64,000 bases of DNA, taken from the sequence record PP496441.1; one strand, given 5' to 3'. Below, one piece after another: positions 11,202-47,026 of this stretch. Each line of letters starts with the position of its first letter. Within the stretch, counting starts at the first letter, position 1. Position numbers and translations under genes: made by a program. Below the pieces are notes generated by a model. It was not told the DNA's origin and did no database searches. It worked only from the letters and a program-made list of their open reading frames with translations.

Positions 11202-11237
11202 AAAAAAGCCCCGTCCAATACCGGCACGGGGCTTTTT
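11202..11237. terminator. Bidirectional terminator between converging operons
   Basis: A6-GCCCCGT...ACGGGGC-T5. Confidence 0.8.
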
Positions 11238-11261
11238 CACCTCACTACGTTACCGGATGCC

Positions 11262-11777: not shown

Positions 11778-11789
11778 GGTCAGCCCTCC

Positions 11790-14633: not shown

Positions 14634-14654
14634 AGTGATTCCCTCGATGGAGTG

Positions 14655-14843: not shown

Positions 14844-14858
14844 ATCGTCTCCTAACCG

Positions 14859-15545: not shown

Positions 15546-15556
15546 TTTCTACCTCG

Positions 15557-15593
15557 AAAAAAAGGGTGGGTGGGCGGTAACACCCACCCACCC
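15557..15593 (-). terminator. Terminator after the major capsid gene
   Basis: Perfect 11-bp stem GGGTGGGTGGG/CCCACCCACCC with U7 on the minus strand. Confidence 0.8.
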
Positions 15594-15615
15594 TATATCA
15601 CCTGACGTGCTGTGG

Positions 15616-16704: not shown

Positions 16705-16767
16705 GAGGTTTTAATCCTGTGCAGGAAAATCAGAAGACCTTGTCTGTATTGATAAGGCTAACTAGCC

Positions 16768-17475: not shown

Positions 17476-17536
17476 GGTACGTTCCTCAAAGGAAGGATAG
17501 ATAAAAACGGATGACTGTCTCGGGTTGAATCAACCC

Positions 17537-19066: not shown

Positions 19067-19208
19067 GCGAAGTGCTCCTCTTGCTGTCAATGGGCTGCTA
19101 CACACTATAAGCATGAGCAGATCTTCGAGCAGGCCACCTCGACGGCCCCTGCTACGGTAAACTCGGATTCACCCCTCCACGCGTATATAACGTTTTGGGA
19201 ACAATTCA

Positions 19209-26709: not shown

Positions 26710-26998
26710 TTATCTCGGCACCGATGAGCAGGCTCTTCAGCCATTCCTCACCACGCTCGTCTCTGTCTTCTACCCGAGTGTCTCCCATCATAATGAATGG
26801 GCAGTCGTTGTGCACCTCGAGCCGGTCGTAGGCTATACCCACGGCAGAATCGATGATATCCCAGCCAGTACAATTGCCGCCGATCTTAACTTGCATCTCG
26901 GCACGAAGCAATCCTGACGCGAAGGTAAGTATAACGGTCTGGAGGCAATTGCCCATAGTGTAGAACTTACCCATCTGTTCGTGATCATAGTTCAACAT
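26660..26998 (-). CDS. Hypothetical protein (start MLNYDH)
   Basis: TAATG coupling at 26996-27000. Confidence 0.65.
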   Translation of the reverse strand: MLNYDHEQMGKFYTMGNCLQTVILTFASGLLRAEMQVKIGGNCTGWDIIDSAVGIAYDRLEVHNDCPFIMMGDTRVEDRDERGEEWLKSLLIGAEIIAIESVSGGGNVNQGS

Positions 26999-27822
26999 TA
27001 GTCTGTCCTCTTGATGTTGCCGGGTAGGGTGTAGGACCACGGCTTGACGTAATCTGCCGGGCGGGTGTAGCCTATCAGGTCTTCACCTTCGTAAGGGCCA
27101 TACTTCCATGGGTCAGTAATCTCTGCGCGTTCAAACCCGATGGACTCGTATAACTTGATCGCACCTTCGTTGTCCGGATCCACGTTGAGATGGTGTGGCA
27201 GTCCTTGGGTCAGTTCCCAAGACAGCAGGAAGTCCAGCATGCCGCTGGCGACACCGCGACGGCGGTAGTCTGGATCAACACTGATCTCCTTGACGAAGCA
27301 CGCATCCACCTTCTCGCTGTCCTCGTCTTCCTTGAACATCACAACGTCCATCAGTCCGACGACCTTGTTGTGCGCGGTAACTGATACCCGTATCTCTTCC
27401 TGATCCGGAATATCCCCGCTCCAGCCATTCCATCGAGCCATGGTCACCGTGTACAGATGGTGTTGCCCGTCATGCTTGGGGCCGTGCACCTGATGCAGTG
27501 CCCGTGCATTCTTCAACTCCGTCTTGGGGCCGGGCTTGATGACCGGTAATTCCAGATGTTTGATTTCCTTTTCAAGCATGATACCAATCTCGGAGTCTTT
27601 CGCTTTCTTGTCTTTGATGGTGGCTCGGTACACTGTGTCTGTGTCCGTGTTGTAAACACCCACCTTATCCGTCATCACCGTAATAGACGGCACAGCGGAC
27701 CAGATGTACTCTTTGCAATGAGCTTTATCTGGGAATGCGAAGCCAACGGACTTGCCGTCTACAATGACCAGCCACGGGCAATGGCCGGGATGCGGAAACC
27801 GAAGGATCTTTTGTGTGGGCAT
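26998..27822 (-). CDS. GNAT acetyltransferase (C-terminal) fused to an unknown N-terminal domain
   Basis: ISVDPDYRRRGVASGML (acetyl-CoA R/QxxGxA motif) and NEGAIKLYESIGF. Confidence 0.85.
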   Translation of the reverse strand: MPTQKILRFPHPGHCPWLVIVDGKSVGFAFPDKAHCKEYIWSAVPSITVMTDKVGVYNTDTDTVYRATIKDKKAKDSEIGIMLEKEIKHLELPVIKPGPKTELKNARALHQVHGPKHDGQHHLYTVTMARWNGWSGDIPDQEEIRVSVTAHNKVVGLMDVVMFKEDEDSEKVDACFVKEISVDPDYRRRGVASGMLDFLLSWELTQGLPHHLNVDPDNEGAIKLYESIGFERAEITDPWKYGPYEGEDLIGYTRPADYVKPWSYTLPGNIKRTD

Positions 27823-27827
27823 GACAC

Positions 27828-28160
27828 TTACCTCGAAGGGGCAGGGGATTTGATTGGTGTCACCAGCTTAAGACCGGGCGAACTGGCATTCAGACGTGGG
27901 ACCGGGTTGATGGTCATCTTGGTCAACGGTGTCAATCCCAGCACACGGACTACTTCTTCCGGCAGCTCGGCACGCGTCCACACAACTACGTCTGGAGACA
28001 CAGTGGACATCACGTAGATGGGCAAGTCATTGATCGCCCGTGCTTCCACTCGGTGCACGGTCTTCAGCCGGTCCAGTGCTTCCTTGGTCAGAAAGGTGGT
28101 GAGTGACTCGACGCTACCCATCCAGGTCATGATGGGGATGTTGCGGCTAGCAGAATTCAT
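27828..28160 (-). CDS. Hypothetical protein
   Basis: ORF in the operon. Confidence 0.7.
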   Translation of the reverse strand: MNSASRNIPIMTWMGSVESLTTFLTKEALDRLKTVHRVEARAINDLPIYVMSTVSPDVVVWTRAELPEEVVRVLGLTPLTKMTINPVPRLNASSPGLKLVTPIKSPAPSR

Positions 28161-33445: not shown

Positions 33446-33480
33446 CATTTACACGAGGCCTATGCGCGTGGGGTAAATGA
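33446..33480. promoter_or_regulatory. Back-to-back divergent GTAAATG motifs
   Basis: Minus 33446-33452 (helicase) and plus 33473-33480 (ligase-like gene). Confidence 0.6.
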
Positions 33481-33541: not shown

Positions 33542-35020
33542 ATGAAATCTGTAGCCGTTGACTACCAAAAGATAGCCAAGGAATGCCAGTGCACCGAGCT
33601 GCCTTCCAAGGTAAGAGTTACTCGTGCACGGGTCTATCCAAACTTGAGGACGTGCCTACTCTTCCTCAAGTACGATGCCAAAGGTGAACTGGTACAAGCC
33701 GAGATCACTGCGCCGTACGACACGTCCACCGAGCCAAAGGTGAGGGTGCTCAAGCACCCGGACAAGAAGTCCGACTTCCTTTCATTATACAGGGCGCTGA
33801 TCCGCCACCAGATCATACCCGAGTCTATTCCGAAGAAAGGTAACGGGATTGCACCAACGCTGGAGGTCATCGGCACACTGGTGAGCCTGCTGCCGGAACG
33901 GGATGTCGAAACCTTCCGTACGCTGACCCCGGCCATCCAGACTGGCAGCGTCATGTACGTCCCGCTGGTCACGTCCCGGCCAATGCCCATGGTGCAACAC
34001 TGGATACCTGTTGACCAGCATTCAGAGCTGGGCATGATCGAGCTAGTCGATACGGATAGCAAGCCTTTCCTTAATCAGTGGGTCAACAGGTTGAGCAACA
34101 CCGCCACTGGTTATGTGATCTACACCCCCGAAGGCTCACACGGTCAGGAACTAGCCTGCTTCCGGGTGCCCAATGTGCAAGGGGAGGAACTGTGTGTGGT
34201 CAAGAAGGTTGACTTCACCCTGACTGTTGCTCGCACGCTCAAGCCGGTACTGACTGTATCCACCAAGAGTACTCGGGCAGTGTCCCGCATTCCCCTACCC
34301 CACTATCTGATGCTACGCAATCACCACATCAAGGTGGGCACGGTTATTTCCCTGCGTCGTAACGACCGAGGTGGGTTGGTGTACCATGAGACGGTGGCCG
34401 AGGAAGGCATGACACCCCTCCCACTGTGCCCGCACTGCCACAGTGGGTCTGTGCTGCGAGGTAGTAGCAATGACGTGTACTGCAATAACGATTCATGCCG
34501 AGGCCTAGCCATTGTGCGACTTCGCTACATCTTGAACAACAAGCTGGACGTCAAGTACCTGAGCGACAATAAGGTAACGGCGCTGATCAATGACAAGCAG
34601 GACCTGTTCAGCTTGCTTAAGACCCCGACGCACCAGTTACGGCACAGACCTGGCTTTGGTGCACGTACCGTGGACGCACTGGAGGAGAAGCTTAACACTA
34701 TTGCCGGTCTTCCACTGCACACACTGGCCGAGATGTCCTGCGCTTTCTACAACGTGGGCGTGCCCCCACTGGATGAGATGGTGTTCAAGAAGATCTTTTC
34801 CGTTATGTCGCTTGACTACCTGAAAGCGCTGCCGTCTACCGGCAAGATGTACAGTCAGCTGCTCGACATCGAAGGTATCCGCAACAACCGCGCAGTGGCT
34901 TTCCTTGCTGGCTGGCCTGCATTTCAACAGTGGATGATAGACCTGAACGCTGCCCTACAGTCTCGCATCGCAATCTCCTCCACGGTAAATAACCCGAAAC
35001 AAATTCGAGGTGTGAAATGA
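33542..35020 (+). CDS. Degenerate LigA-like protein (OB fold, C4 zinc finger, HhH) lacking the KxDG catalytic motif
   Basis: RBS GGAGAA; VKKVDFTL...LKPVLTV and IKVGTVISLRR (OB); CPHCHS...YCNNDSC; PGFGARTV and LLDIEGI (HhH); YPNLRT at the expected EPKLDG position. Confidence 0.7.
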   Translation: MKSVAVDYQKIAKECQCTELPSKVRVTRARVYPNLRTCLLFLKYDAKGELVQAEITAPYDTSTEPKVRVLKHPDKKSDFLSLYRALIRHQIIPESIPKKGNGIAPTLEVIGTLVSLLPERDVETFRTLTPAIQTGSVMYVPLVTSRPMPMVQHWIPVDQHSELGMIELVDTDSKPFLNQWVNRLSNTATGYVIYTPEGSHGQELACFRVPNVQGEELCVVKKVDFTLTVARTLKPVLTVSTKSTRAVSRIPLPHYLMLRNHHIKVGTVISLRRNDRGGLVYHETVAEEGMTPLPLCPHCHSGSVLRGSSNDVYCNNDSCRGLAIVRLRYILNNKLDVKYLSDNKVTALINDKQDLFSLLKTPTHQLRHRPGFGARTVDALEEKLNTIAGLPLHTLAEMSCAFYNVGVPPLDEMVFKKIFSVMSLDYLKALPSTGKMYSQLLDIEGIRNNRAVAFLAGWPAFQQWMIDLNAALQSRIAISSTVNNPKQIRGVK

Positions 35021-35781
35021 ACAATCAAAACAGAACTCGTATCGCTGTGCTTGTCGGCGGCGGTCTGGACTCACATGCGTACATGGTATTGAAAGCCGAC
35101 CAGCCTCAGACAGACTTCATTCATGTGGACTACGGCCAGCGGGTTGCAGTAGCCGAGAGAAACGCCGTGTTGCAAATGGCTGAGAAGCTGGGCATTGCCC
35201 GCAGCCGGGTGTACACGCTGATCTGCAACAAGAAGAATCACATGCGCAAGGTCAATGACGGTGTGGGTGTGTTGTTTGGCACCGGCCCGGTCGAGATGGA
35301 CAATGCGTTTGTTAAGGGACGTAACCTGTTCCTGATTCAGAAGGCCATCGAGCTGGGCTACGGTCACGTGCACTTGACGCTGACCCAAGAGCGTGGCCGG
35401 ATGTTCCCCGATGCCGATCTGGCATTCGTCCAGCTGGTTGACAACCTGATGCACCGCAGTTATGACGTGAGGGTATCCGCCCCCTACATCATGGAAGACA
35501 AGCATCGGGTGATGTTCAAGGCGTATCGGCATTGCCCCGAGTTCCTCGATATGTCTTTCACGTGCTGGGTAGGTCCTTATGTGGAATGTGGCACGTGCCC
35601 GCACTGCGTCAAGAAGGAAAAGATTCGAGCCGAGATGATCGTTGAGAAGATTGAATACGATCTCAGCAAGGATGAACGTGAGGCGCAGTGGGAGCAAGTC
35701 AAGGCAGGCTACGGCGACGCGTTGAAGCCCGCTGAGACCATCAACATGAACATTCAGGTTGTTGACGGAGGACTGAAATGA
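35017..35781 (+). CDS. queC: QueC-like ATP pyrophosphatase (AANH), copy 1
   Basis: VLVGGGLDS (PP-loop variant), VDYGQR, VKGRNLFL, FPDA, SFTCW...CGTCPHC. Confidence 0.82.
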   Translation: MNNQNRTRIAVLVGGGLDSHAYMVLKADQPQTDFIHVDYGQRVAVAERNAVLQMAEKLGIARSRVYTLICNKKNHMRKVNDGVGVLFGTGPVEMDNAFVKGRNLFLIQKAIELGYGHVHLTLTQERGRMFPDADLAFVQLVDNLMHRSYDVRVSAPYIMEDKHRVMFKAYRHCPEFLDMSFTCWVGPYVECGTCPHCVKKEKIRAEMIVEKIEYDLSKDEREAQWEQVKAGYGDALKPAETINMNIQVVDGGLK

Positions 35782-36488
35782 ACAAGTTCTTAGGTTGGTT
35801 CAAGCGTCTGCTGGATAAGAAGCACAAGTCGATCACGATGACGTTGACCGACGCCGAAGGTAAGTTGGTCACCATCCACATACCGCAAGGTGCGGGTGTC
35901 GAATACACGCTCTCGAAGTCGGGCACCCACTTGAACGTCTCAGTTAAAGACGACGTCTTCATGTTGCGCACGAATGGCGCTGGAGGCGGTGGCAGTGGAA
36001 GTTCCAAGCCCGGTCTCAACGGTGGCCCCGGCCATACACCTATCCCCCGGTCCCCAAGCTTCACGGGCGCTGGTACGCCGAACTACGGTCACGCAGGCGA
36101 CCCGCCTGTTGGTGCTCAAGCTTCGTTCCCTATCGGCGCCCGAGCAACTGTTTCTGGTGGTGGGCGCGTTGGTGGCCTGTCAGGTGGAAGCGCAAACGGC
36201 ACAATGGCTGGTGGTGGAGATGGCTTCGTTCCCTCTCCAATCCGTAGCTCTGATCGAGCTTACCTGATTAGAGGTTTGTATTACGTCATCACGACGAAGA
36301 AGATAACGGGAGAGCAATACCCGATCCATGAGCTTCTGCATTGGGGTAAGAAGTCAATCGAACTCATGGGCAAGTTCTCCACCGTCCGAGACGCTATCGA
36401 CGAACTCAAATTGAAGACGGGTATCCCATTCGAAGACCTGACGGACTATCAGGTTGATTCCCTTCCCAAACGACTGTGCAAGCCTTGA
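35778..36488 (+). CDS. Hypothetical protein with a central Gly/Ser/Pro-rich low-complexity segment
   Basis: ATGA-coupled to QueC copy 1; GAGGGGSG...GGGDG tract. Confidence 0.7.
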   Translation: MNKFLGWFKRLLDKKHKSITMTLTDAEGKLVTIHIPQGAGVEYTLSKSGTHLNVSVKDDVFMLRTNGAGGGGSGSSKPGLNGGPGHTPIPRSPSFTGAGTPNYGHAGDPPVGAQASFPIGARATVSGGGRVGGLSGGSANGTMAGGGDGFVPSPIRSSDRAYLIRGLYYVITTKKITGEQYPIHELLHWGKKSIELMGKFSTVRDAIDELKLKTGIPFEDLTDYQVDSLPKRLCKP

Positions 36489-36492
36489 TCGG

Positions 36493-36500
36493 GTAAATGG
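36493..36500 (+). promoter_or_regulatory. GTAAATGG motif
   Basis: About 27 nt upstream of QueC copy 2. Confidence 0.55.
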
Positions 36501-36526
36501 CCCGTAACTAATCCGGAGACACCAGC

Positions 36527-37345
36527 ATGACCACTGCGCCCCCAAAGATTATCGTTGCATTCAGCGCCGGTACAGATTCAACTACAGCGGCCTACTACTA
36601 TCGCAAGCTCGGCTATCAGGTAACGCTGGCCGTGTTCGATGACGGCGCATGCAACGATCCACTTGACCCTCTGTACGATCCGAACAAGCCGAAGGACTTG
36701 ACCAACTTCTCGGATGAGTTCTACGATTACGTACGGATTCACCAAGAGCACACGGAAGGCCATCTTCAGTTCGACTTCGTGGAGATTCGTTATCCGCAAC
36801 TCGCATTGCTGGAAGCCAACAAGACAGCCAAGCCCGGTCGGGACAATGCAGCAGCAGCAGAGGCTGACGGCTTGGGCTTCTGGGTCGGCTTCAAGGGCCT
36901 GATGGCAATGTTGCTGATGAGCCACGGCGCCGCCAATGGTTACGAGGCAGTAGTCTTCGGCCACATGCCGTACAACAACCATTACGAAGATGAGCTGCCC
37001 CAGAACTTCGAGCTGCTGCGTCAGTACATGGTTACGGCCTATGGCAGCCGAGTGGAAATTCCTCAGATCTACCACCCGTTCTATCGACCTAATTTCGATA
37101 CCAAGGAAAAGGTTATTGAGCTGGCGCAGGCAATCGGCGTGCCCTTGCGAGATACCTATTCGTGTCGCCGAGGTGAAGTAGAAACCCGAGGTATCCTCCT
37201 GCCACTTCTGCGTGGCGGTAACTCCAACTACGTGAGCCCCACCTACCGTTGGAAGCATTGTGGTACGTGTGAGAACTGTGTCGAACGCAAGCGAGCCTTC
37301 GCGGCGCTGGGCATGAAAGATCCTGCCCCTTATATGGAACATTGA
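36527..37345 (+). CDS. queC: QueC-like ATP pyrophosphatase (AANH), copy 2
   Basis: VAFSAGTDS, TKEKVIELA...GVPLRDTYSCRRG, HCGTCENCVERKRAF...DPAPY. Confidence 0.82.
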   Translation: MTTAPPKIIVAFSAGTDSTTAAYYYRKLGYQVTLAVFDDGACNDPLDPLYDPNKPKDLTNFSDEFYDYVRIHQEHTEGHLQFDFVEIRYPQLALLEANKTAKPGRDNAAAAEADGLGFWVGFKGLMAMLLMSHGAANGYEAVVFGHMPYNNHYEDELPQNFELLRQYMVTAYGSRVEIPQIYHPFYRPNFDTKEKVIELAQAIGVPLRDTYSCRRGEVETRGILLPLLRGGNSNYVSPTYRWKHCGTCENCVERKRAFAALGMKDPAPYMEH

Positions 37346-37346
37346 T

Positions 37347-38363
37347 ATGGCCCTTTCAATCTGGCCGCTGACCGAAGGTGAACTCGGTCAGGGCCTCGTC
37401 AACGAACTGAATCGTACCAGCAAGGCGCTGGTGAACCGGAGTATGTGGTCTTTGCCATTGCTCCGGCGGTTGTTTTATCGGCGCACCGAGATTGGTGTCC
37501 CGGAGCTACTCCACGTCTGTACCAGCATTCATCGGGGCAAGACTTACTTCTGCCTGTTGGTGAACTTCCGAGACGTGGTGATGGGCAACCCCGAGCAATA
37601 CGGATGGGACCTAGCTGGCCGGTGGTTGTTCTACGATGTGGATCTGCTGGATACCCCGGAATTTAAACAGGTAAACGCGGCTATTCGTAAGGTGGCTACG
37701 GTCAACACGGTTACCTACGGTCAAGCATTCGTTCCGGATGAAGGTGGTATGGGGGAGGAGCACTGGATCAAGAAACTGAAAGGTAACTACCGCCCCCACA
37801 TCTTCGGCGAAAAGTCAAAACAGGTTATCGTCAGTCAGACCTGCGGACACGCGGCTACTCACGTGCTGACCGAGGCAGTGATGTCATTCGGTATCCAGCG
37901 CGCTGAGAGATTTCTCGCGGAAGGTCAGTCGGATGTCATGCCGGAGTTGTATGACCTACCCATGCAGCTAGCCGGTCTAGGCTCGATCCCCGGAACCCGG
38001 ATTGGCACCGTGTCGCTCACCTGCCGGGATACCCATGCGCTGATCGGTACCCTGTCGTTCTACGTTGTGGCGGGCTTGGGTCACAGTGATATCTTGTATA
38101 TGCACGAGATGCTGATTGATCCGGATCCGAAGTGGAAGCATCTATCGGTGGCCGTCAACTTGCACATTCAGGCAATCATGTATGTGCGCTATCTAAACAA
38201 CCGATCTGATCGGGCTTCGGACTTGGTTATCAACCTCGGATTCAACTTGGACGAGAAGTACAACACATACAAAGAGGTGTTCCGTCCGAACAAGTCCGAA
38301 ATGGAAATCTATACCGGCATGCACACCGAGCCAGGCGTCCCACTGTCCTGTTTCAAGGGGTAA
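37347..38363 (+). CDS. Divergent GNAT-fold protein, ATE1/Bpt/Fem-like (putative aminoacyl-tRNA transferase)
   Basis: C-terminal INLGFNLDEKYNTYKEVFRP resembles the ATE1/Bpt YLGY...YKxxFRP end. Confidence 0.45.
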   Translation: MALSIWPLTEGELGQGLVNELNRTSKALVNRSMWSLPLLRRLFYRRTEIGVPELLHVCTSIHRGKTYFCLLVNFRDVVMGNPEQYGWDLAGRWLFYDVDLLDTPEFKQVNAAIRKVATVNTVTYGQAFVPDEGGMGEEHWIKKLKGNYRPHIFGEKSKQVIVSQTCGHAATHVLTEAVMSFGIQRAERFLAEGQSDVMPELYDLPMQLAGLGSIPGTRIGTVSLTCRDTHALIGTLSFYVVAGLGHSDILYMHEMLIDPDPKWKHLSVAVNLHIQAIMYVRYLNNRSDRASDLVINLGFNLDEKYNTYKEVFRPNKSEMEIYTGMHTEPGVPLSCFKG

Positions 38364-38366
38364 GAC

Positions 38367-39368
38367 ATGTACACTCCGTATTCCCAAAACAGTCTGATGC
38401 AATCGATCCCGCTGGATGACCAAGGTACATTCGCCCATCCACCGTACACGATGGAAGGAGAGTTCACCGACGTGTGGACGAATCCAAACCTATATGGATT
38501 CGTCAGCCTGTTGAACGGCCAGAGCAATAGCCGGGCATATCGAGACTGGATGACCACCCACAATCTTCCAGCCCTGTTCCTCGGTCCGCACCATGAAGAC
38601 AACTTCTGGTTTGAATTCAGCACTGGTCTCGATTCCAACTGCACGCTGGATTACAACGAGATCAACGTCCAAGGCAACCTGCAGGACTTCCTTGGGAGAT
38701 TGACGTCATCTCGCCGTCGCTCCGTGCTCAAGGCAAAGGAAACGGATACAATGATCCACAAGGCAGGCTCGGTAGCCAACTTCAACCTGTATCATCCGGT
38801 GGAGGGTAGGCTGTATAGTCTGACCGTGATTCACGAACGCCGGGTGATGAAAGATATTTCCGAGTTTATCGAATCGAAACTCTGGAGTATGAAGCATACG
38901 CCTACTGACCTCACGTACGGTGCATTCACCACTCTGATGGACTACATCCGGTTGAAGCAGCGAGATGACACGCCGCTGGGCCACCGGTTGCGCAACGTAC
39001 AGCTCTTGGTCATTCGAGATGAACGCTCCGGGTTTATCGTGTCAGTTCATCTGGTGGCGATCAACACGTTGAAAGATGATTCCATGAACCCCACCAAGAC
39101 GTACATGCACTCCTTCGCACGCATCACTGTTCTCCCTGCACGTATCGCCTTACTTGCGTTGATCAAGGCGGTTCAAGAGTTAAACGTCACCAGTCAGTAC
39201 GCGTCCCGTGCACTGGCGAAGATCGACTATCTTGATGTGAGCAACGTGGTGCTGTCCGAGCGAGAGCAGTACAAGTCGGACTTCTTAACCGGCAAATGCC
39301 AAGTGCGTGCGTGGGCGTCCCCGGCGCTGCTGGAACGGCAGTTACCTTTCGTTACGCCGATCCCGTAA
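38367..39368 (+). CDS. Divergent Fem/Acetyltransf_6-like dupli-GNAT protein
   Basis: DFLGRLTSSRRRSVLKA (Fem-type basic helix); C-terminal YLDV...YKSDF. Confidence 0.45.
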   Translation: MYTPYSQNSLMQSIPLDDQGTFAHPPYTMEGEFTDVWTNPNLYGFVSLLNGQSNSRAYRDWMTTHNLPALFLGPHHEDNFWFEFSTGLDSNCTLDYNEINVQGNLQDFLGRLTSSRRRSVLKAKETDTMIHKAGSVANFNLYHPVEGRLYSLTVIHERRVMKDISEFIESKLWSMKHTPTDLTYGAFTTLMDYIRLKQRDDTPLGHRLRNVQLLVIRDERSGFIVSVHLVAINTLKDDSMNPTKTYMHSFARITVLPARIALLALIKAVQELNVTSQYASRALAKIDYLDVSNVVLSEREQYKSDFLTGKCQVRAWASPALLERQLPFVTPIP

Positions 39369-39372
39369 CTCT

Positions 39373-39380
39373 GTAAATGA
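39373..39380 (+). promoter_or_regulatory. GTAAATGA motif
   Basis: Intergenic, upstream of 39423. Confidence 0.55.
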
Positions 39381-39422
39381 TGGGAACAGCCCCACCATCA
39401 CTTCATCTCTAGGGTAGTTCCC

Positions 39423-40475
39423 ATGCAAGACTTCGATAAGATCATGATCGACAGTAGTTTGACATCAAATCTGGTGTACGCAGGCTTGGGTAGCTTGATC
39501 ACACCCCGTGCACTTGACCTGCTGATCGAACATCAGGCTGCACTGGAAAACGTATACGCCAATCTGGAAACAGCGTATCAGATTACCCCACCCTTCCCCT
39601 GTGAAGCTGCATTCAATTCCCCTGACAAAGATCCTGTGCTGGTCGCCGACTATCTGAATGCTACTCCCGCCATCCGTTGCGGAGAGCTGGCTGGATTCGA
39701 GGCAAAGCCCGGCAGTTACTACCACGCCCCCGCTGCTGGCATCTGCCCGGAACATCGCATCGACGTACGAGGTATGTCTTTGCGTGAGTTCGATCACTAT
39801 CTGGTTGAGCGGGCGGAGGTGTCACGGATCACTACCAATCTGGTGGCCGACAAGTTCCGCTGTGAGACTCATGTGTACAAAGTGGATGAAGATCATATCC
39901 TGATCCATGACGCCGAACGAGTTGGGATCAGCCAGACGGACTTCCGCCGCATGTGGGCGCAGACCCGCCGCCGGGAAATCGCTGATAATTATCTGCAGCA
40001 CATGCCCATCGAAGACTCCGCCAAGGATGATCAGGTGGTGCGACTGATCAACGAAGACGTAGCACGGGTGTTCGCCCAGAACGTCGACTACGACCGCATG
40101 ATTCCGCCCGAGCTGATCTTCGATGGTCAGGGCAAGCCGGTGCTGACCGTGCTGAAAGATTGCAACGCCAAGGTATTGGGCATTGGTGTGTACGTCATCT
40201 ACAAGTCAGCTGACCCAGAGCATGACAGCGAACTGCACTGGCGTGGCGCTTTCTACGATCACGAAGATCCGCGTACTGCATCCATGGGCATTGAACACGC
40301 TCTGGTTGCCAGCGCACTGCACACAGCGTACGCCTGCAACGCAGTTCTCTATCTGACCAAGGCACCGAAGTCCGTGTGTGACGCATGGAAGACGGAAGTG
40401 CACCAAGGTTACGGGCTGGTCCGTAATGCGATGCCGGAACTGTCTGACACCCCTTACATTCTGGCTATCCAGTAA
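39423..40475 (+). CDS. Divergent ATE1/Bpt-like GNAT-fold protein
   Basis: AFYDHEDPRTASMGIEHAL...VLYL resembles ATE1/Bpt FYDP...SLG...L...YLG. Confidence 0.45.
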   Translation: MQDFDKIMIDSSLTSNLVYAGLGSLITPRALDLLIEHQAALENVYANLETAYQITPPFPCEAAFNSPDKDPVLVADYLNATPAIRCGELAGFEAKPGSYYHAPAAGICPEHRIDVRGMSLREFDHYLVERAEVSRITTNLVADKFRCETHVYKVDEDHILIHDAERVGISQTDFRRMWAQTRRREIADNYLQHMPIEDSAKDDQVVRLINEDVARVFAQNVDYDRMIPPELIFDGQGKPVLTVLKDCNAKVLGIGVYVIYKSADPEHDSELHWRGAFYDHEDPRTASMGIEHALVASALHTAYACNAVLYLTKAPKSVCDAWKTEVHQGYGLVRNAMPELSDTPYILAIQ

Positions 40476-40479
40476 ATAG
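40472..40479 (+). promoter_or_regulatory. GTAAATAG motif
   Basis: Overlaps the stop codon; about 30 nt upstream of the ATP-grasp gene. Confidence 0.5.
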
Positions 40480-40508
40480 CCGGTAACTCCATCCATTGAG
40501 GTACTTCC

Positions 40509-42593
40509 ATGAAATCCGTGAACCCCATCTTCAAGCACGTTCCCCAGTTCGACTGGCCTGTCATCCCTCGTGCACAGTGGGAAGAGATCATCAAGGGAAA
40601 AGAGCATGTGATGTTCGACTCCTTCTCGCAGCTCGCTCAAGTGTTGGCTATCCCGGTGAGCAGTTACCAGTTCTACTTCGAAGATGGGTCCACGTTGTTC
40701 GCCGGTCCCGAAGCAACCTTCACCGCCGCGCCGTACCCGCTGTATCAGGACCTTGAATTCGTCCTGACCCCTGACGAGACGTTGGTGCCGGGTCTTGCAC
40801 TGGATACCAAACCGTGGGGCCTGTACACCGACGAATGGGTGGACAACTACGAAGGTGCGGACAAGGAAGACATCGGCAACAAGACCGGGTTCGAATTCAT
40901 TCCGCTGTCGGACGCCTTGAAACTGGTGGTCCTCAACACGGAGACCATGCAGCTCCAGTACACTGCCATCGAGAGCTTCACGTACGACGGCGTGACTTAC
41001 GTATACCTGCTGGCCGATGGCGTGTGCTGGGTACTGGCGGGCAAGTCCGGTGGTCTGGTTGCCAGCGAGCATGACAAAGGTGCTGCGTTCATCATGGTGT
41101 CCCATCCCGAGTTCGCCGGGTGCAGCGTAGACAACATGTATCCAAGTGAGTTCGGTGAAGCGGAAGCGACGTTCTACGTTCAAGACGAGGAACACAATTA
41201 CCTGGACGCGGCTAACCGCATCTTCGAGGAAGCCAAGGACGTAGGCGCTGGCACGTTCCTGACCATTGAGACCGGTGATGGATTGCCGACCGCGCTGGCG
41301 TACAACCTGCGGTACAGTGATGTGGCCCACGTTAACCTGCCGATGCACAACATCCACCAGTTCACTTCTCTGCACGTACGACTGGGTGAGACTCCTAACT
41401 TTTCCGAGGCCCCGGAAGCGTGCCGCATGAAAGAGGTGATGGAGTATCTGGCGGACCCTGAGTCCCCGGTAGATCATTACTGGTCGGCCATCATGGTACT
41501 GGAGAAGAACTTCCCCGGTTTCGCCGACGCCCTGAAAGACTCCAGTGTCCCGACCCGTGACATCGTGCACTCCAAACAGGCGTTCAGCTTGGAGATCGAT
41601 CGCCAGTTCGGCAAGGAAGTGGCAAGCAAGATCGGCCTGAACACTGGCGTATTCGCCCAAGTGAAAGACCGTGATGAGTGGCTGACCCGTCAAGACGATT
41701 TTCCTACCGACAAGGTGGCCGTCAAGTACAACACCAAACACTTCATCGGCATCTTCGACAAGGACGAGGTATCGAATTCCATCAACATGTGGCTGGCCGG
41801 TCAACCCGGAGAGTCGCTGATGATCGAAGAGTACTTCGGTGAGGGCAATCAGGAATTCAACCTGTGCTATGTGATCAACGAAGAGTTTGTGCAGCCGACG
41901 CTGTTCCTGTGCGAAGTCAACAAGATCCTCGGTAATGACACCGGCGGCAAAGGTGGCAACACGCTGGCCTGCCATGATGCTCGTATTAACAAGTACCCTG
42001 AGTTCTTCGAGCCGGTAAATAATGCGCTTGCTAACCTGCATGAGCACGTGGAAGGTGTGAAGGGCTGGGTTGACCTGAGCTTCATGGTCCGCGACGGCAT
42101 CCCTTACTTCACAGAGTGGTGCATTCGCATCGGCTGCTCCAACAACGCCACCATCGTGCGCCAGATGGAGACCCCTCTCGACGTTCTTTTGACTAACGTG
42201 GTTAACAAGGTGCATACCGAGCTGTCTTGGAAGCACTCCATGTCTGTTAGCGTGGACATCTACAGCATGCCGCTGTCCGCAGGCAATGATGCCAACATGC
42301 AGTTCACCGACTCGCTGACCACTCCGGTAGAGATGGTGTCCCCACTCAATCTGGAATTGGCAGCGGAGAGTTTCTTCGACCCGATTGATTCGGCCTGGAA
42401 CGCGGTGTACGACGGCTACATTGTCGAGGCGTACAACCGATATGGCACCGTCTCGGGGTATTCCACCAACTGGAACTTCGCCTGCAATGCGGCGTACAAT
42501 CACTTGAAAGATCAGTCGGTGTTGTACGGGGCATACCGCGAAGCGCCTGCCCACCACGACCCACTGACTCTGTTCCCTTTCCTCAAGGCGTAA
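40509..42593 (+). CDS. ATP-grasp amide ligase, PurD (GAR synthetase)-like, with an N-terminal extension
   Basis: VAVK, MIEEYFGEGNQEF, CEVNKILGNDTGGKGG (cf. PurD DHKR...GDTGPNTGGMG), GIPYFTEWCIRIG (cf. ExNxRFG). Confidence 0.72.
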   Translation: MKSVNPIFKHVPQFDWPVIPRAQWEEIIKGKEHVMFDSFSQLAQVLAIPVSSYQFYFEDGSTLFAGPEATFTAAPYPLYQDLEFVLTPDETLVPGLALDTKPWGLYTDEWVDNYEGADKEDIGNKTGFEFIPLSDALKLVVLNTETMQLQYTAIESFTYDGVTYVYLLADGVCWVLAGKSGGLVASEHDKGAAFIMVSHPEFAGCSVDNMYPSEFGEAEATFYVQDEEHNYLDAANRIFEEAKDVGAGTFLTIETGDGLPTALAYNLRYSDVAHVNLPMHNIHQFTSLHVRLGETPNFSEAPEACRMKEVMEYLADPESPVDHYWSAIMVLEKNFPGFADALKDSSVPTRDIVHSKQAFSLEIDRQFGKEVASKIGLNTGVFAQVKDRDEWLTRQDDFPTDKVAVKYNTKHFIGIFDKDEVSNSINMWLAGQPGESLMIEEYFGEGNQEFNLCYVINEEFVQPTLFLCEVNKILGNDTGGKGGNTLACHDARINKYPEFFEPVNNALANLHEHVEGVKGWVDLSFMVRDGIPYFTEWCIRIGCSNNATIVRQMETPLDVLLTNVVNKVHTELSWKHSMSVSVDIYSMPLSAGNDANMQFTDSLTTPVEMVSPLNLELAAESFFDPIDSAWNAVYDGYIVEAYNRYGTVSGYSTNWNFACNAAYNHLKDQSVLYGAYREAPAHHDPLTLFPFLKA

Positions 42594-42596
42594 TCC

Positions 42597-43760
42597 ATGA
42601 GCACTCCATTCCAAGAGTTCACCCTAGAAGGGTGGATTCGCTACATGAGAGATGAAAGCATCATCTGGCGCGCGTACGCTGATGGTCATCCGGATAAGGT
42701 CGAGTTCAGCCCGGAGTGGCGTGACGAGATGTATCGGTTGATGGTGCAGTTCAAAGATCTGCTGCCGATGTCGTTTTCCAATCCGGTGTACGGCTTCACT
42801 GAAGGTTGGCTGGAAGGGCTCGGACTCCAGCCCTTTTATGGCGATGATCCGTTCAATCCGATGGTGCAACCGCTTAGCCACCCTCTGGTGCATGTGGGGC
42901 TTCCGTTTACTCTGAGCGAGCTGACGGCGGGCGTATGGGACTGTCAGTCCCTGAGCGCTCACCTGGAGCGTCCGCTGCTGGTCGATACATTCGAACCGAT
43001 CCCAGTGCCATCTATTAGCCTGGACGCTTACAAAGCCGTCCTGACCGTACGGGACCGGGAAGAGATCGTGATGAGTGCGGGAACCCCGGTGAACTACTTC
43101 CTCTGGTTGAATAGTCCGATCACCGAACTCAAAGACGACTTCGACGTTTATCTGGCCAGCCTGACCAAGAAGCGCCGCTACAAAGTGAAGCAGGCACTGG
43201 CGACAGTGGGCACCGAAGAGAACCCGGCTATCAGCGTCAGTACTGGATCTCGTTTCGGCGAAGGGTTGTTGTCCGATCAGGTGAACAGCATCCTCGCGAC
43301 TTTCGAAGATCCGGTGGACATAGAGTGCATGCTTCTTCAGCTGCTGTTCGGGGTGGCAACCTGCAATACCCATCCGCATCTTGTCGATCTGGTTTGTGCA
43401 GACCAGCAGTTGGGGATCTTCATCAAGCGCAACGGCCACACGATGAATTTCCTCTACAACCGTGACCCGGACAACCGCGCTGACTCAGGCATCAACCTGC
43501 TGACCCAGTACGTGCGCCATCTGCACATGAACCGCCCGGAAGGTGTGATGTACGTGGACCCGACATGTCGATATCGGCCTGACGAGGACAGTATGAACAC
43601 CTACAAGCGGGTGATCACCAACGAGAACCGGTATCACCCAATGCCGTTCGTCTCGGCTGATCCTGCGCACATCGAAGGTGTTATTACCCCGGCGTTCATT
43701 GCAGGTCATTGGCAGATGTCGGCGTCCAATGGCCCGGCCAATCCTGAGATGATGGAGTAA
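42597..43760 (+). CDS. Fem/Acetyltransf_6-like dupli-GNAT protein
   Basis: DVYLASLTKKRRYKVKQAL; C-terminal SGINLL...YVD...YKR. Confidence 0.55.
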   Translation: MSTPFQEFTLEGWIRYMRDESIIWRAYADGHPDKVEFSPEWRDEMYRLMVQFKDLLPMSFSNPVYGFTEGWLEGLGLQPFYGDDPFNPMVQPLSHPLVHVGLPFTLSELTAGVWDCQSLSAHLERPLLVDTFEPIPVPSISLDAYKAVLTVRDREEIVMSAGTPVNYFLWLNSPITELKDDFDVYLASLTKKRRYKVKQALATVGTEENPAISVSTGSRFGEGLLSDQVNSILATFEDPVDIECMLLQLLFGVATCNTHPHLVDLVCADQQLGIFIKRNGHTMNFLYNRDPDNRADSGINLLTQYVRHLHMNRPEGVMYVDPTCRYRPDEDSMNTYKRVITNENRYHPMPFVSADPAHIEGVITPAFIAGHWQMSASNGPANPEMME

Positions 43761-43762
43761 CC

Positions 43763-44710
43763 ATGGCAAAGCACAAGGTCAAAAGGTTGGAAATCAACCA
43801 CATCTACGACTTCTACCCGTTGTATCAGGTGATGTACGGGCGTGGCATGGAGACCAAAGCGTTCGAGGTCTCCAAGTTCGCCAAGATGGTGCTGGACTTC
43901 GAAGCATCAACCAGTACTCGCCGGAAGTGGGACGTGCTGGAACCTTTCAGCGGTATCAGCGAGCATGAACACTTCTTCGCTGCTACTGGCCTGAACATCG
44001 AGCACTACACCGGCATGGACATCGTGGTTCCAGATGGGGCCAAAAACGTCATTCAAGGTGACATCATCACCGACACCCTTCCGTTTCACGTCAACGCGGT
44101 GTTCGCCTTCTACTACAGCTTGCAGAATGTACGGGACGCCAAGACTGGCATGCACACGCGGGAAAAGCTGGTGGAGTTCTTCGACAACATCCTCGGCCAT
44201 CTGCAAGTCAATGCGAACAAGAGCCGTATGCCCGCAGTGTTCGCTTTCCACCTTGACCAGCCTGAAGACCCTAATTACTATCTGACGTCCCGTGCCGACG
44301 TTGGAGGTGAACAGTCATGGACCGCACCCGCGTGTGGTCTGCTGGGGCAGTGGGTCAAGTGCAAACCGACCGACACTCTGGAAGTGAAGTGCAATCTGGA
44401 CACCTGGTACAACCGTGTGCAGTGCACCGCGTACGATCAGGCGGAGGATATCCAGATTCTGGTAAATGGGCGAGTAGTGGCGACCGTTGAGATCGAACAG
44501 CCGTTCACCCATCGGGTCTGGACCGAGCATGAGGTGATCGACATCCTGCGGGGTCTGGACTACAATCTGCACTTCCACATGTACAACGGCACCATCTCCA
44601 ATTACGACTTCTTGATGACCCGTTTGGAAGACAAGCCCGTTCCCGGCGATGAAGAGGCTAATACTAATCAGATGACAACTGATATGCTGGTTGTCGTTAA
44701 TCCGAGGTAA
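43763..44710 (+). CDS. Class I SAM-dependent methyltransferase, copy 1
   Basis: DVLEPFSG (motif I variant), MDI, IQGDI, VNAVFAFYYSL. Confidence 0.65.
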   Translation: MAKHKVKRLEINHIYDFYPLYQVMYGRGMETKAFEVSKFAKMVLDFEASTSTRRKWDVLEPFSGISEHEHFFAATGLNIEHYTGMDIVVPDGAKNVIQGDIITDTLPFHVNAVFAFYYSLQNVRDAKTGMHTREKLVEFFDNILGHLQVNANKSRMPAVFAFHLDQPEDPNYYLTSRADVGGEQSWTAPACGLLGQWVKCKPTDTLEVKCNLDTWYNRVQCTAYDQAEDIQILVNGRVVATVEIEQPFTHRVWTEHEVIDILRGLDYNLHFHMYNGTISNYDFLMTRLEDKPVPGDEEANTNQMTTDMLVVVNPR

Positions 44711-44712
44711 GA

Positions 44713-45630
44713 ATGGCTAAGCCCAAGATCCCTACACGAACCATCCCCACGTTGTACCAAGACTGGGGGTTGTACAGCGCCATCTGCGAACTGCCGCAGG
44801 AGACGATGCTGATGATGTCGCGCTTCGTGGCAGACCGGACCATCGAACATGCCGAGCGCCATGACCTGGAAAGTGTGGCGATCATGGAGCCCTTTAGCGG
44901 GCCGATCCCGTATTACGAGCCAGACATCCGAAGCTTCCTGACTCGCGCCCGTGTTGACCTGGATACGTACGATCATGTCGAGTACCTTGATCACGGTGGA
45001 TTGTCGGAAGACAACAATATCATCATCGGTGACATCACCACCATCGACCTGAAACAGAAATACGACGTCATCTACGGCAGTTACGGCAGCTTGGCCTGCC
45101 TGCTGCTGGATCACACGCACAACAAAGCGTATGAGAAGTCACACGCAGCTCTGGTCAACATTCGCGAGCACCTGAAACCCAACGGCATCTTCGTCCTGAA
45201 CGCCAACGGATCCAGCGAAAGCCTGCTGAATAACCTGTTGAACTCCGATGAGCCGGATCAAGAGATTCGCGTCCGTCCGGGATCGCAGTTGGGCAAGGCG
45301 TTCCGAATCAAACCAGACAGTAACGCGCTGCTTCGTTTCTCCTACAACGTGGAGTACGACCGACGCACCACCTGCACCATGTGCCATTACAGCGATATGG
45401 TGCTGTCTGTAAATGGGGTTGACATCCAGCGCTGGGAGGTGGAATCCCCGACGTATCTTGCGCCGCTGGATGAACCCGAACTAATTCGAATGGCAGGTAT
45501 GGCTGGTTTCAATCTGGACAACACCGAGTTCTACGGATTGGACACCACCGGTTATCCTGCCTTCTTCAAAATGGATACGGTCTGCGACGGGTCATGGTCA
45601 CCCGCCGAGTTCGTAGTCTTTCGCACCTAA
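44713..45630 (+). CDS. Class I SAM-dependent methyltransferase, copy 2
   Basis: IMEPFSG, IGDITTIDLKQKYDVIYGSYGSL, EHLKPNGIFVL. Confidence 0.8.
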   Translation: MAKPKIPTRTIPTLYQDWGLYSAICELPQETMLMMSRFVADRTIEHAERHDLESVAIMEPFSGPIPYYEPDIRSFLTRARVDLDTYDHVEYLDHGGLSEDNNIIIGDITTIDLKQKYDVIYGSYGSLACLLLDHTHNKAYEKSHAALVNIREHLKPNGIFVLNANGSSESLLNNLLNSDEPDQEIRVRPGSQLGKAFRIKPDSNALLRFSYNVEYDRRTTCTMCHYSDMVLSVNGVDIQRWEVESPTYLAPLDEPELIRMAGMAGFNLDNTEFYGLDTTGYPAFFKMDTVCDGSWSPAEFVVFRT

Positions 45631-45640
45631 CGAGGTTCCT

Positions 45641-46876
45641 ATGAGCGTTATCATCCCCACCGTAGCGATGGAGAGTGGTCAGCCAGACATGATCATTCAA
45701 GGCTGTTCCACGGGTCGCCTCTCTATGGCCGAGCCTAACGAGAGCGCCAAACCCAAGTCTTCCAAGAAGCTGTACGAACGTGAAGACCTGATGGCGTACG
45801 ACAGCGAGTCGGAGCACTGGCAGAAGCAGTTGGCCCGCCGCTACGCGCATCACGGTGAGATGGTCGGCGTGTTGAACAACGTCGAGGTGGTGCCGGAAGC
45901 CACCTATCAGAACTTCGACATGAAGATCACCCCGTACACCGCGCAGTTGATGGACCAGAACGACCCCAACTGCCCGATCCGTTTGCAGTACATGCCGACC
46001 AACAAAGAGCTGGAGTCTATTCAGCGCGAAGAGACCATGCACAACGAGCTGGGCGAGGAAGAGGACACCATCCCCGGTACCTCGGTCGTGCACCGCTACC
46101 CGCGTCGCGTCTTGTTCCTGACCACTACCCAATGCGCCAGCTTCTGCCGTTACTGCACCCGTGCACGCATCGTCTCCCACGGCGGCGAAGCGGCGATCAC
46201 CAAGAAGCACCTTGACGCCAGCATCGACTACATCGCCGGGAACAAGGACATCGAAGACGTGCTGCTGTCCGGCGGTGACCCGTTCATCCTCCCAGACAAC
46301 AAGCTCGACGAGATCCTCGGTCGTATCCGCGCCGAAGCACCTCACGTTCGCTTCCTGCGTATCGGTAGCCGACTGCCGGTACAGATGCCGACCCGTATCA
46401 CTCCAGAGCTGTGCGAGATTCTGGAACGCCACAACGTCAACATGGTCAACATCCATGTGAACCATCCGAAAGAAGTAACCCCTCTGCTGGCCTCCCGGAT
46501 GAAGATGTTGCGCAAAGCTGGCGTGATGATCGGCAATCAGGCCGTCATGCTGAAAGGCGTGAACGACTCCATCGAGGTGATGACCGAGCTGTGCTTGCGT
46601 ATGGTCGAGATGGGCGTGCGTCCGTACTATGTCTACTCCAACGATCCGGTGGCGCAGGCTGCGCACTTCACCGTGTCGCTGAAAGAGATGCTGAACATCA
46701 ACGAGGGTATGCGCGGCTTCCTGTCTGGCCCGGCTATGCCAACCTTCGTGGTAGACGGTGTGGGTGGCTTGGGCAAGATGCCGGTGCAGAAAGAGTACGT
46801 CAGCTTCGATAAGAACGGCGGTATCTTCGCCCAGAACTTCGAAGGGAAAACGGCCCGCATGCCCCATCTGGAATAA
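45641..46876 (+). CDS. kamA: Lysine 2,3-aminomutase (KamA family radical SAM/PLP enzyme)
   Basis: HRYPRRVL, CASFCRYCTR (CxxxCxxC), LLSGGDP, RIGSR, HVNHP, NQAVMLKGVND, RPYYVYSND, FVVDGVGGLGKMP (PLP Lys). Confidence 0.93.
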   Translation: MSVIIPTVAMESGQPDMIIQGCSTGRLSMAEPNESAKPKSSKKLYEREDLMAYDSESEHWQKQLARRYAHHGEMVGVLNNVEVVPEATYQNFDMKITPYTAQLMDQNDPNCPIRLQYMPTNKELESIQREETMHNELGEEEDTIPGTSVVHRYPRRVLFLTTTQCASFCRYCTRARIVSHGGEAAITKKHLDASIDYIAGNKDIEDVLLSGGDPFILPDNKLDEILGRIRAEAPHVRFLRIGSRLPVQMPTRITPELCEILERHNVNMVNIHVNHPKEVTPLLASRMKMLRKAGVMIGNQAVMLKGVNDSIEVMTELCLRMVEMGVRPYYVYSNDPVAQAAHFTVSLKEMLNINEGMRGFLSGPAMPTFVVDGVGGLGKMPVQKEYVSFDKNGGIFAQNFEGKTARMPHLE

Positions 46877-47026
46877 GCGTTCCAGACACTCCCTAGTTCC
46901 AGTGTACAAGCTTCAAATGCCCCATTTGCGCTAGGTCCTGTAAATGGGGTTGCTTATCCGCGTTGCAATGTGTTACGCTGGATTGGACCCATATTATTCC
47001 GATAACCGAACCACCGAGGTATCACC

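Follow-up and report, generated by a model that had tools for sequence, protein, structure and literature searches.

The genome of Pseudomonas phage vB_PpuM-Pori-4, a jumbo phage of P. putida (PP496441.1, 202,632 bp), carries a cluster of eleven genes, g1 to g11, which we analysed in a stretch of 64,000 nucleotides of that record (the window; record coordinate = window coordinate + 124000). The cluster fills positions 35017-46876 of the window, a block that megablast matched to Pori-4 at 100%. On balance, we favour the view that it does the tailoring in a new branch of 7-deazaguanine modification of phage DNA, in which amino acids, probably with beta-lysine among them, and methyl groups would be attached to the base. 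This reading is preferred because FolE, QueE and tRNA-guanine transglycosylase (TGT) relatives are encoded in the same genome, because of the active sites of the two QueC paralogues in the cluster, and because of the genes with which the cluster enzymes are associated in other phages. What it draws on by direct observation is the families of the enzymes, the co-occurrence of their genes and the conservation of active-site residues. A first reading of the window, made from the sequence alone (the original prediction), had proposed a phage-encoded, multi-enzyme amide-forming pathway with phage DNA among its possible targets. The pathway was borne out, in that the aminomutase, the ATP-grasp ligase, the QueC-family enzymes and at least one tandem GNAT protein are supported, and phage DNA is a sensible target.

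7-Deazaguanine genes in Pori-4 and the module in other phages

Outside the window, Pori-4 encodes FolE (GTP cyclohydrolase I; record 197362-198102; 134 bits in Pfam), a QueE-like radical S-adenosylmethionine (SAM) protein (record 194422-195393) that matches PHROG 2076 over its full length with 142 bits, and a TGT-family protein, Pori4_00105 (record 82055-83425; 33 bits against Pfam TGT, cut-off 26.3). Relatives of the QueE-like protein include those of the 7-deazaguanine phages nt-1 and KVP40, Campylobacter phages and haloviruses. Pori4_00105 aligned with the archaeosine tRNA-guanine transglycosylase 1iq8 over residues 42-292 (phmmer, E 1.5e-3), and the alignment takes in the catalytic 'dsggfql' and zinc 'cncpvc' stretches. 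The Vibrio coralliilyticus phages GR7B and GR11A have orthologues of FolE, the QueE-like protein and the TGT-family protein at 40%, 48% and 52% identity, respectively, and further orthologues of Pori4_00105 occur in other jumbo phages. In viruses, 7-deazaguanine modification of DNA is recognised by a DpdA-family gene as its signature, and phage sets of FolE, QueE and DpdA have so far always marked DNA modification (Cui 2023). The original prediction had stated that the cluster did not fit canonical 7-deazaguanine modification. This exclusion was an artefact, because it rested on the 64-kb window only, and with FolE, QueE-like and TGT-family genes elsewhere in the same genome it has to be withdrawn.

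Two neighbours of the QueE-like gene were considered for other steps of the pathway and rejected: a conserved protein of 129 aa between QueE and FolE has no conserved His triad, as would be needed for QueD, and a 408-aa neighbour of QueE, considered as DpdA, matches a sliding-clamp PHROG. In the QueE region of Vibrio phage nt-1, no DpdA was found.

A synteny search across jumbo phages, suggested at the outset as a check on the original prediction, found the block in Pori-4 and eight relatives infecting P. putida, and a shorter syntenic cluster in Vibrio phages. The eight relatives, all jumbo phages of the Estonian CEPEST collection, match the block at 88-98% with a coverage of at least 93% each (megablast). 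The shorter cluster, located by tblastn with g7, g8 and g11, lies between a ligA-like gene and topoisomerase II in GR7B and GR11A. It begins with a DUF5591/ArcS2-type protein (28 bits in Pfam), a canonical QueC of 268 aa in which every canonical motif is found, a QueC-like protein of the same family as g1 (family A) and a 340-aa protein; orthologues of g8, g7 and g11 follow in this order, and a small classic GNAT closes the series.

Contigs encoding g8 relatives yielded seven further independent instances (L008, L010, L011, L012, L021, L024 and L025), with DNA polymerase, ribonucleotide reductase or gyrase/topoisomerase genes as neighbours. The common core consists of QueC-like proteins of two families (A and B), a PurD-like ATP-grasp protein, a g8-like and a g9-like protein, together with one or two further proteins that are 250-350 aa long. 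The g8-like and ATP-grasp genes are adjacent, or at most 1-2 genes apart, in nine of nine distinct contexts, and a QueC-family gene lies within ~6 kb of the pair in all contigs long enough to show it (7/7).

The most telling instance is a metagenomic phage contig (L020; ENA WOOD18-1 scaffold_2765, 1210-19135). There, genes for QueE-like, FolE, ATP-grasp and g8-like proteins come first and are followed by a methyltransferase-motif protein, a Fem-like-motif protein, QueF, QueC, a DpdA-like protein and a DpdM-like protein (CxxCxxCC). Judged by its gene content, this is a recognisable dPreQ1-type DNA modification cluster with the ATP-grasp and g8-like genes inside it. If aminoacylation takes place there, preQ1 would offer its aminomethyl group as a natural acceptor.

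Further observations were made on these contigs. In L025 (11080-12945), a PurD-like ATP-grasp domain is fused to a classic GNAT (GARS_A and Acetyltransf_1, 621 aa) and a SET-domain protein is encoded next to it; a SET-domain gene is also found near the GR11A cluster. Small classic GNATs occur within the module in the Vibrio phages, directly after KamA, and in L011. L010, a contig of a metagenome-assembled genome with a minimal module, also encodes a family-A DNA polymerase fused to a uracil-DNA glycosylase (UDG) domain (3901-6825). According to a recent paper, UDG-polymerase fusions occur in SPO1- and SP15-like phages, where they are linked to T-modified genomes, and in N4-like phages. Pattern scans of IMG/VR, based on g7 and on the KamA and g8 alignments, and of GTDB genomes found no relatives, and the pattern scan of metagenomes gave a single marginal locus (L019).

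Enzymes of the cluster

The original prediction had called ten of the eleven genes enzymes by motif. Family assignment was secured for five of these (g1, g3, g7, g8 and g11), is plausible for two (g9 and g10) and could not be verified for three (g4, g5 and g6).

g1 (35017-35781, + strand, as are all genes of the cluster) and g3 (36527-37345, +) encode QueC-family PP-loop enzymes, as had been proposed for two genes of the block: they score 68.6 and 47.1 bits, respectively, against the Pfam QueC model (cut-off 22 bits), g3 in its C-terminal half. g1 belongs to family A and the more divergent g3 to family B, and the two families are paralogous (hhalign, 98% probability). The canonical QueC signature, which has been defined experimentally, comprises SGGxDS, YxQxHxxE, VPxRN, YPDC and C(x)8CxxCxxC (PMC13082051). 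g1 retains GGGxDS, YxQ..E, xxxRN, FPD and C(x)8CxxCxxC, and thus the Y of YxQ, the R of RN and the aromatic residue of YPDC, which are essential in QueC (PMC13082051); the His of YxQxH and the Cys of YPDC (here FPDA) are missing. g3 retains only SxGxDS and the zinc motif: YxQxH is lost, RN is changed to aromatic-K and YPDC to (Y/F)xDE.

The sole PDB match of g1 was Cap9 (9nto_B, E 2.6e-8), a protein of type IV CBASS (cyclic-oligonucleotide-based anti-phage signalling system). Cap9 residues R86, Y115 and D117, which contact the deazaguanine, align with R, F and D in g1. In sequence, g1 is closest to Cap9, and it keeps the deazaguanine- and ATP-binding residues. Cap9 is a QueC-family ligase by which 7-carboxy-7-deazaguanine (CDG) is adenylated and then joined to an amine that is not ammonia (PMC13082051); it shows that an enzyme of this family can hand activated CDG to such an amine. 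We predict the same chemistry for g1, namely adenylation of the CDG carboxylate and its capture by an amine. Cap9 and the related QatC belong to bacterial defence and modify a partner protein at its N-terminus, whereas the Pori-4 genes are phage-encoded and form a pair of paralogues. No partner with a modifiable N-terminus could be recognised for g1, which may thus work like Cap9 without belonging to a Cap9 system; its predicted acceptor is an amino acid or a nucleic-acid-bound base. Orthologues of g1 are encoded in L010, L011, L012, L021 and the Vibrio phages. The second QueC-like protein of L021 shares 44% identity with g3, and a sequence search of the PDB with g3 gave no match.

Between the two lies g2 (35778-36488, +), a glycine-rich, lineage-specific and fast-evolving gene with no match in Pfam, PHROGs or NCBIfam. 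It is absent from all other instances of the module examined, and its identity to the counterparts in the related phages Illi-2 and Peetri is only 71% and 72%.

g7 (40509-42593, +) encodes a carboxylate-amine ligase of the PurD-like ATP-grasp type, whose N-terminal extension of ~230 residues is lineage-specific. Its residues 354-585 match the NCBIfam purD model (E 2.4e-7). Across the g7 family, GARS_A was detected in five of seven members (best E 9e-10) and GARS_C in three, these matches coming from the shorter orthologues. This PurD-type core agrees with the original ATP-grasp call. g7 is not an orthologue of PurD itself (30 bits vs a cut-off of 288), and sequence searches of the PDB returned no match. 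Its orthologues in L008 and the Vibrio phages are 36-39% identical.

Four Fem/ATE1-type GNATs had been predicted, and this stands for g8 (42597-43760, +), whose fold was modelled with AlphaFold and compared with Foldseek. phmmer found 37 relatives of g8 among 1.84 billion representatives, two with Acetyltransf_6 and two with FemAB_like matches. The model built on their alignment is confident (pLDDT 85.5, pTM 0.87) and has a tandem-GNAT fold of the Fem/MprF type. In the PDB, it is most similar to Sbb17 and Sba18, two peptide synthases that depend on aminoacyl-tRNA (E 1e-6); next come alanyl- and lysyl-phosphatidylglycerol synthases (A-PGS/MprF), FemX, a tandem GNAT and Ate1. Foldseek gave a probability of 1.00 for Sbb17, A-PGS, MprF and FemX; the TM-scores of the structural matches are only 0.38-0.48, at 13-14% identity. 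A BFVD search returned GNAT-like phage proteins. By sequence, g8 itself had nothing above threshold in Pfam, PHROGs or NCBIfam, and the profile of its family had no match among PDB sequences. From the model, g8 is predicted to be an aminoacyl-tRNA-dependent aminoacyl transferase. It shares its fold with the Fem/MprF/DUF2156-fold amide synthases (Sbb17/Sba18, FemX, A-PGS/L-PGS, Ate1), and its best match among them aminoacylates the amine of a streptothricin-type intermediate. It differs from them in lying below all Pfam thresholds, and both donor and acceptor are predictions in its case; the donor may be aminoacyl-tRNA or acyl-CoA.

For g4, g5 and g6, the evidence for a Fem-type fold consists of short motifs and sub-threshold matches, and this part of the prediction was put too firmly. 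g4 (37347-38363, +) is an orphan with a C-terminal TYK motif, as in the g8 family; its three relatives among 5.8 billion clusters come from the same phage genus and one short contig, and the AlphaFold model made from these three sequences is unusable (pLDDT 37.8). g5 (38367-39368, +) and g6 (39423-40475, +) are likewise orphans, for which homologue searches found nothing beyond the phage genus. g5 contains the g8-family pattern (F/Y)LxxLTxxRR and a C-terminal YK, at an hhalign probability of just 9.6% against that family, and g6 has only a C-terminal WK in common with it. None of the three matched Pfam, PHROGs or NCBIfam, and hhalign comparisons of their profiles with the g8 family, with one another, and with family C, DUF5591 and classic GNAT profiles were insignificant. 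In the pooled set, sub-threshold Acetyltransf_6, ATE_C and MOZ_SAS matches point toward Fem-like GNATs. At the level of motifs, g5 is a probable distant Fem-like GNAT and g4 a possible one.

g9 (43763-44710, +) and g10 (44713-45630, +) are paralogues (blastp E 1e-7; hhalign 99.2%). Orthologues of g9 are present in L008, L010, L011, L012 and L021 at 27-36% identity, and L008 also holds a fragment of a g10 orthologue. In g9, the invariant residues E60, G64, D86 and G99-D100 include a motif-I-like stretch and resemble a SAM-binding site. Family matches are sub-threshold throughout (E 0.016-0.1): Methyltransf_31 and Methyltransf_12 for the g9 family (E 0.034-0.098), and a faint daptide methyltransferase match for g10 (E 0.016). 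The g9 family profile had no match in the PDB. The two methyltransferases of the original prediction are thus plausible from the SAM-site-like pattern and fall short in the family searches; we regard g9 and g10 as possible class I SAM methyltransferases, on weak evidence.

g11 (45641-46876, +) encodes a KamA-family radical SAM/pyridoxal phosphate (PLP) aminomutase of the lysine 2,3-aminomutase type, in line with the original call. It scores 275 bits against TIGR00238 (cut-off 199) and 270 bits against Clostridium lysine 2,3-aminomutase 2a5h (HMMER). Cys125/129/132, Arg134, Asp293, Asp330 and Lys337 of 2a5h correspond to C165/169/172, R174, D335, D372 and K379 of g11; among these are the cluster cysteines, the PLP lysine (Lys337) and the Asp pair that binds the lysine epsilon-ammonium group. 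In glutamate 2,3-aminomutases, both aspartates are reportedly replaced. The conserved Asp pair suggests that the substrate of g11 is lysine or, failing that, another basic amino acid, and g11 is predicted to be a source of beta-lysine. Substrate and stereochemistry are deduced here, because g11 does not reach the lysine equivalog cut-off of NCBIfam (312 vs 525), nor those for glutamate and arginine. g11 is 51% identical to the Vibrio phage orthologue at the same cluster position. Among module instances, KamA is restricted to the Pori-4 and Vibrio lineages; KamA homologues with 34-41% identity to g11 and the Vibrio proteins are also found in the huge uncultured phages (462, 735 kb) LR756500.1 (L006, 11983-13131) and LR756501.1, with no other module gene nearby.

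In its architecture and lysine-binding residues, g11 resembles the lysine 2,3-aminomutases known from KamA/AblA-AblB, EpmB-EpmA and the supply of beta-lysine for streptothricin. In AblA-AblB, a GNAT gene stands beside the aminomutase gene, and the Vibrio phages place their small classic GNAT directly after KamA. g11 is unlike these systems in that it scores under all NCBIfam equivalog cut-offs and has Que genes as its genomic partners. Modification of elongation factor P (EF-P), which the original prediction had already set aside, was rejected, given that no EpmA (LysRS-like) domain was seen in the eleven genes or their flanks and that g11 is below the EpmB cut-off (223 vs 369).

Gene layout and expression

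The description of the block as eleven tightly packed, co-oriented genes proved accurate: eleven + strand open reading frames span 35017-46876 exactly and coincide with the GenBank coding sequence (CDS) calls, with spacings of -4 to 54 bp (overlaps of 4 bp, or gaps of 1-54 bp). The co-oriented series starts one gene earlier, with g0 (33542-35020, +; start according to the GenBank CDS), after a divergent intergenic region common with the helicase gene, and it continues into the topoisomerase II genes. g0 encodes a LigA-derived protein with a zinc finger/HhH region. Its NCBIfam LigA match is limited to residues 309-409 (E 1.6e-6), and it is the orthologue (28% identity) of the 'ligA' gene immediately upstream of the Vibrio phage cluster. 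It is probably a conserved upstream neighbour and not a pathway enzyme, and it may be a DNA-binding LigA derivative rather than a ligase. Pori-4 additionally has a full-length NAD-dependent DNA ligase (record 123142-125121; window 1-1121, - strand).

The genes of the block diverge within the genus in a mosaic manner. Compared with Illi-2, Pori-4 has identities of 68% in g4, 71% in g2 and 87% in g8, but of 98-99% in the flanking g3, g5, g6 and g7. Compared with Peetri, the pattern is another one, with 77% in g1, 72% in g2 and 90% in g4. Certain tailoring genes thus seem to undergo allele exchange or to be under diversifying selection.

The cluster is placed in the replication module, and the idea that it shares an internal motif with the replication genes was corroborated: GTAAATG was recovered in gaps of the cluster and of the helicase and topoisomerase regions. 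The window contains 11 copies, against 4.4 +/- 1.9 expected, a number reached in 0 of 100 shuffles. One copy lies upstream of g0 (33473-33479, +) and another faces the helicase gene (33446-33452, -). Others are found in the 38-bp gap upstream of g3 (36493-36499, +), in the 54-bp gap upstream of g6 (39373-39379, +), in the 150-bp gap between g11 and g12 (46940-46946, +) and after the topoisomerase large-subunit gene (49873, +), and g9 and g10 each contain one (44462 and 45409). Scans for sigma-70 promoters and terminators were at chance level, and Pori-4 encodes its own sigma factor; GTAAATG may be a phage-specific promoter element, as a candidate. The pattern fits co-expression of the cluster with the replication genes, as the original prediction had supposed.

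Two other loci of the genome are of note. The GNAT domain of an annotated acetyltransferase 7 kb upstream of the cluster (26998-27822, -) is clear (E 1.6e-13 against Acetyltransf_1 when the pooled proteins were scanned). A thymidylate-synthase homologue (record 26846-28012) has the unusual length of 388 aa, its Pfam match extending across residues 33-382, and genes for dihydrofolate reductase (DHFR), a deoxynucleoside monophosphate (dNMP) phosphatase and a 362-aa MazG-like pyrophosphohydrolase are close to it; a second, pyrimidine-directed modification in Pori-4 is possible.

Proposed pathway, alternatives and significance

The substrates, the order of the steps and the product of the pathway that we propose are deduced from the enzyme assignments. 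FolE, QueD (from the host or unrecognised) and QueE would produce CDG. g1 would then adenylate the 7-carboxylate, like QueC and Cap9, and hand it to an amine instead of proceeding to the nitrile; this amine could be ammonia or an amino acid, e.g. beta-lysine from g11. g3 and the ATP-grasp enzyme g7 would form further amide bonds at carboxylates, g8 and possibly g4-g6 would load amino acids from aminoacyl-tRNA onto free amines, and g9 and g10 may methylate the product. A DpdA-like enzyme would swap guanine in the DNA for the deazaguanine, before or after decoration, and phage DNA with this base would be protected against restriction and against further defences that target DNA. As a tentative and more specific proposal, the DNA might carry 7-deazaguanine with a short, partly methylated aminoacyl or beta-lysyl chain, made by the QueC-derived ligases, the ATP-grasp enzyme and the Fem-type transferases.

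Several points weigh against this scheme. The full canonical QueC signature is present in neither g1 nor g3. No QueD (PTPS domain), QueF or DUF5591 was found in the Pori-4 proteins scanned, in which small open reading frames were not exhaustively covered, and without a QueD the supply of CDG would depend on the host or on an unrecognised enzyme. The TGT-like gene lies ~75 kb from the cluster, and its action on DNA, rather than on tRNA or protein, is deduced from sequence. Among the module instances, KamA is found in two lineages only, which means that beta-lysine cannot be part of the core chemistry. The enzymes closest to g8 in structure have small molecules and lipids as their substrates, not nucleic acids, and g4-g6 and g9/g10 are without an assigned function. 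Finally, the sole hint of modified virion DNA is anecdotal. The paper on the CEPEST collection, in which the cluster genes are not discussed, states in its methods that a standard phage kit sometimes gave an extremely low DNA yield and that another column worked more efficiently for the G3 jumbo phages, which is compatible with chemically unusual DNA.

Among the alternatives, synthesis of a free, diffusible metabolite, a peptidyl-deazapurine or beta-lysine compound with an antibiotic-like or anti-defence role that is never put into DNA, fares best, and we still consider it improbable. The combination of a KamA-type aminomutase, an ATP-grasp enzyme, a methyltransferase and a tRNA-dependent transferase follows the logic of peptidyl-nucleoside and beta-lysine antibiotics, and Sbb17 and Sba18, the best structural matches of g8, are streptothricin-group enzymes bound to streptothrisamine. 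However, both Pori-4 and the Vibrio phages encode a TGT/DpdA-family protein, and a DpdA-like gene stands inside the L020 cluster; every instance of the module is located in a phage replication module, and no exporter or self-resistance gene was seen.

A slightly poorer candidate is a chance neighbourhood of two unrelated functions, in which the QueC-like genes would serve ordinary dADG or dPreQ0 synthesis and g4-g11 would have another target, such as the cell wall, some protein or the side chain of a thymidine. The long thymidylate-synthase homologue with its DHFR, dNMP phosphatase and MazG-like neighbours would suit this idea, as would the fact that Fem/MprF relatives normally act on cell-envelope substrates. 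It is difficult to reconcile with the recurrence of the g8-like/ATP-grasp pair beside QueC-family genes in every informative contig, from otherwise unrelated phages, and with the interleaving of this pair with Que genes in L020.

That the QueC-like enzymes deazaguanylate a phage or host protein, as Cap9 and QatC do in bacterial defence, with the other enzymes modifying the conjugate, is less probable again. The phage's own FolE and QueE-like genes suggest bulk synthesis of the base, and the TGT-like protein aligns to a true tRNA-guanine transglycosylase through its catalytic and zinc motifs. Protein deazaguanylation would account for Cap9 being the only PDB match of g1 and for the position of the glycine-rich g2 between g1 and g3, and it would suit the partnership of Cap9 with a remodelled TGT-family protein, Cap10 (PMC13082051), but g2 is absent from the other instances of the module and no CD-NTase or QatB-like partner was seen.

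Least probable of all is hypermodification of host tRNA, of a queuosine- or archaeosine-like kind that would retune translation in infection: relatives of TGT, QueC, ArcS and KamA do have tRNA- or translation-linked roles and the Vibrio phages encode a DUF5591/ArcS-type protein, but standalone phage DUF5591 proteins (ArcS2) were shown to act in DNA modification, of which phage FolE/QueE/DpdA sets have so far always been a mark (Cui 2023), Pori-4 has no tRNA genes, and the cluster is located among replication genes. Plain queuosine salvage was rejected as an explanation.

The preferred reading, a tailoring arm for 7-deazaguanine in DNA, has to be set against what is known of such modifications. 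Eight 7-deazaguanine derivatives have been described in phage DNA, with substituents of no more than one carbon, to which a methyl or formyl group may be added, and the known phage pathways combine DpdA and FolE/QueD/QueE/QueC with or without QueF, ArcS2, Gat-QueC, DpdM, DpdN or DpdL (Hutinet 2019; Cui 2023). Pori-4 resembles them in its FolE, QueE-like, QueC-family and TGT/DpdA-family genes and in the setting of a lytic phage replication module, and its Vibrio relatives add a canonical QueC and the DUF5591/ArcS2-type protein. It departs from them in having no recognised QueD, and in its ATP-grasp enzyme, Fem-type tandem GNAT, KamA and non-canonical QueC pair, which the described pathways lack. 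Neither the 2023 survey of phage 7-deazaguanine (Cui 2023) nor a 2026 survey of the QueC family mentions ATP-grasp, aminomutase or GNAT partners, and full-text literature searches found no description of this gene combination.

Thymidine hypermodification in phages such as M6, ViI, SP10 and PhiW-14 offers a parallel: a multi-enzyme phage cluster in the replication region makes amino-acid-derived side chains on a DNA base. The base is different there and so are the enzymes. Thymidine hypermodification employs a 5-hydroxymethyldeoxyuridine (5-hmdU) kinase and an aGPT-Pplase.

Amino-acid decoration of 7-deazaguanine would be a kind of DNA base modification not yet described. If the preferred reading is true, it would enlarge natural DNA chemistry by way of enzymes that otherwise belong to cell-wall, lipid and antibiotic biosynthesis, and it would give the QueC-family amide ligases a second function besides bacterial defence. 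It predicts that the phage DNA resists restriction and CRISPR nucleases and is difficult to sequence, and the combination of g8-like, PurD-like ATP-grasp and QueC-like genes provides a signature for further cases in metagenomes. Should the base indeed bear an aminoacyl chain, no peptide-like modification of a DNA base would have preceded it, nor any application of aminoacyl-tRNA chemistry to such a base. The fast-evolving transferase genes (g4 and g8) would then serve to vary the side chain, as part of an arms race against nucleases that depend on modification.

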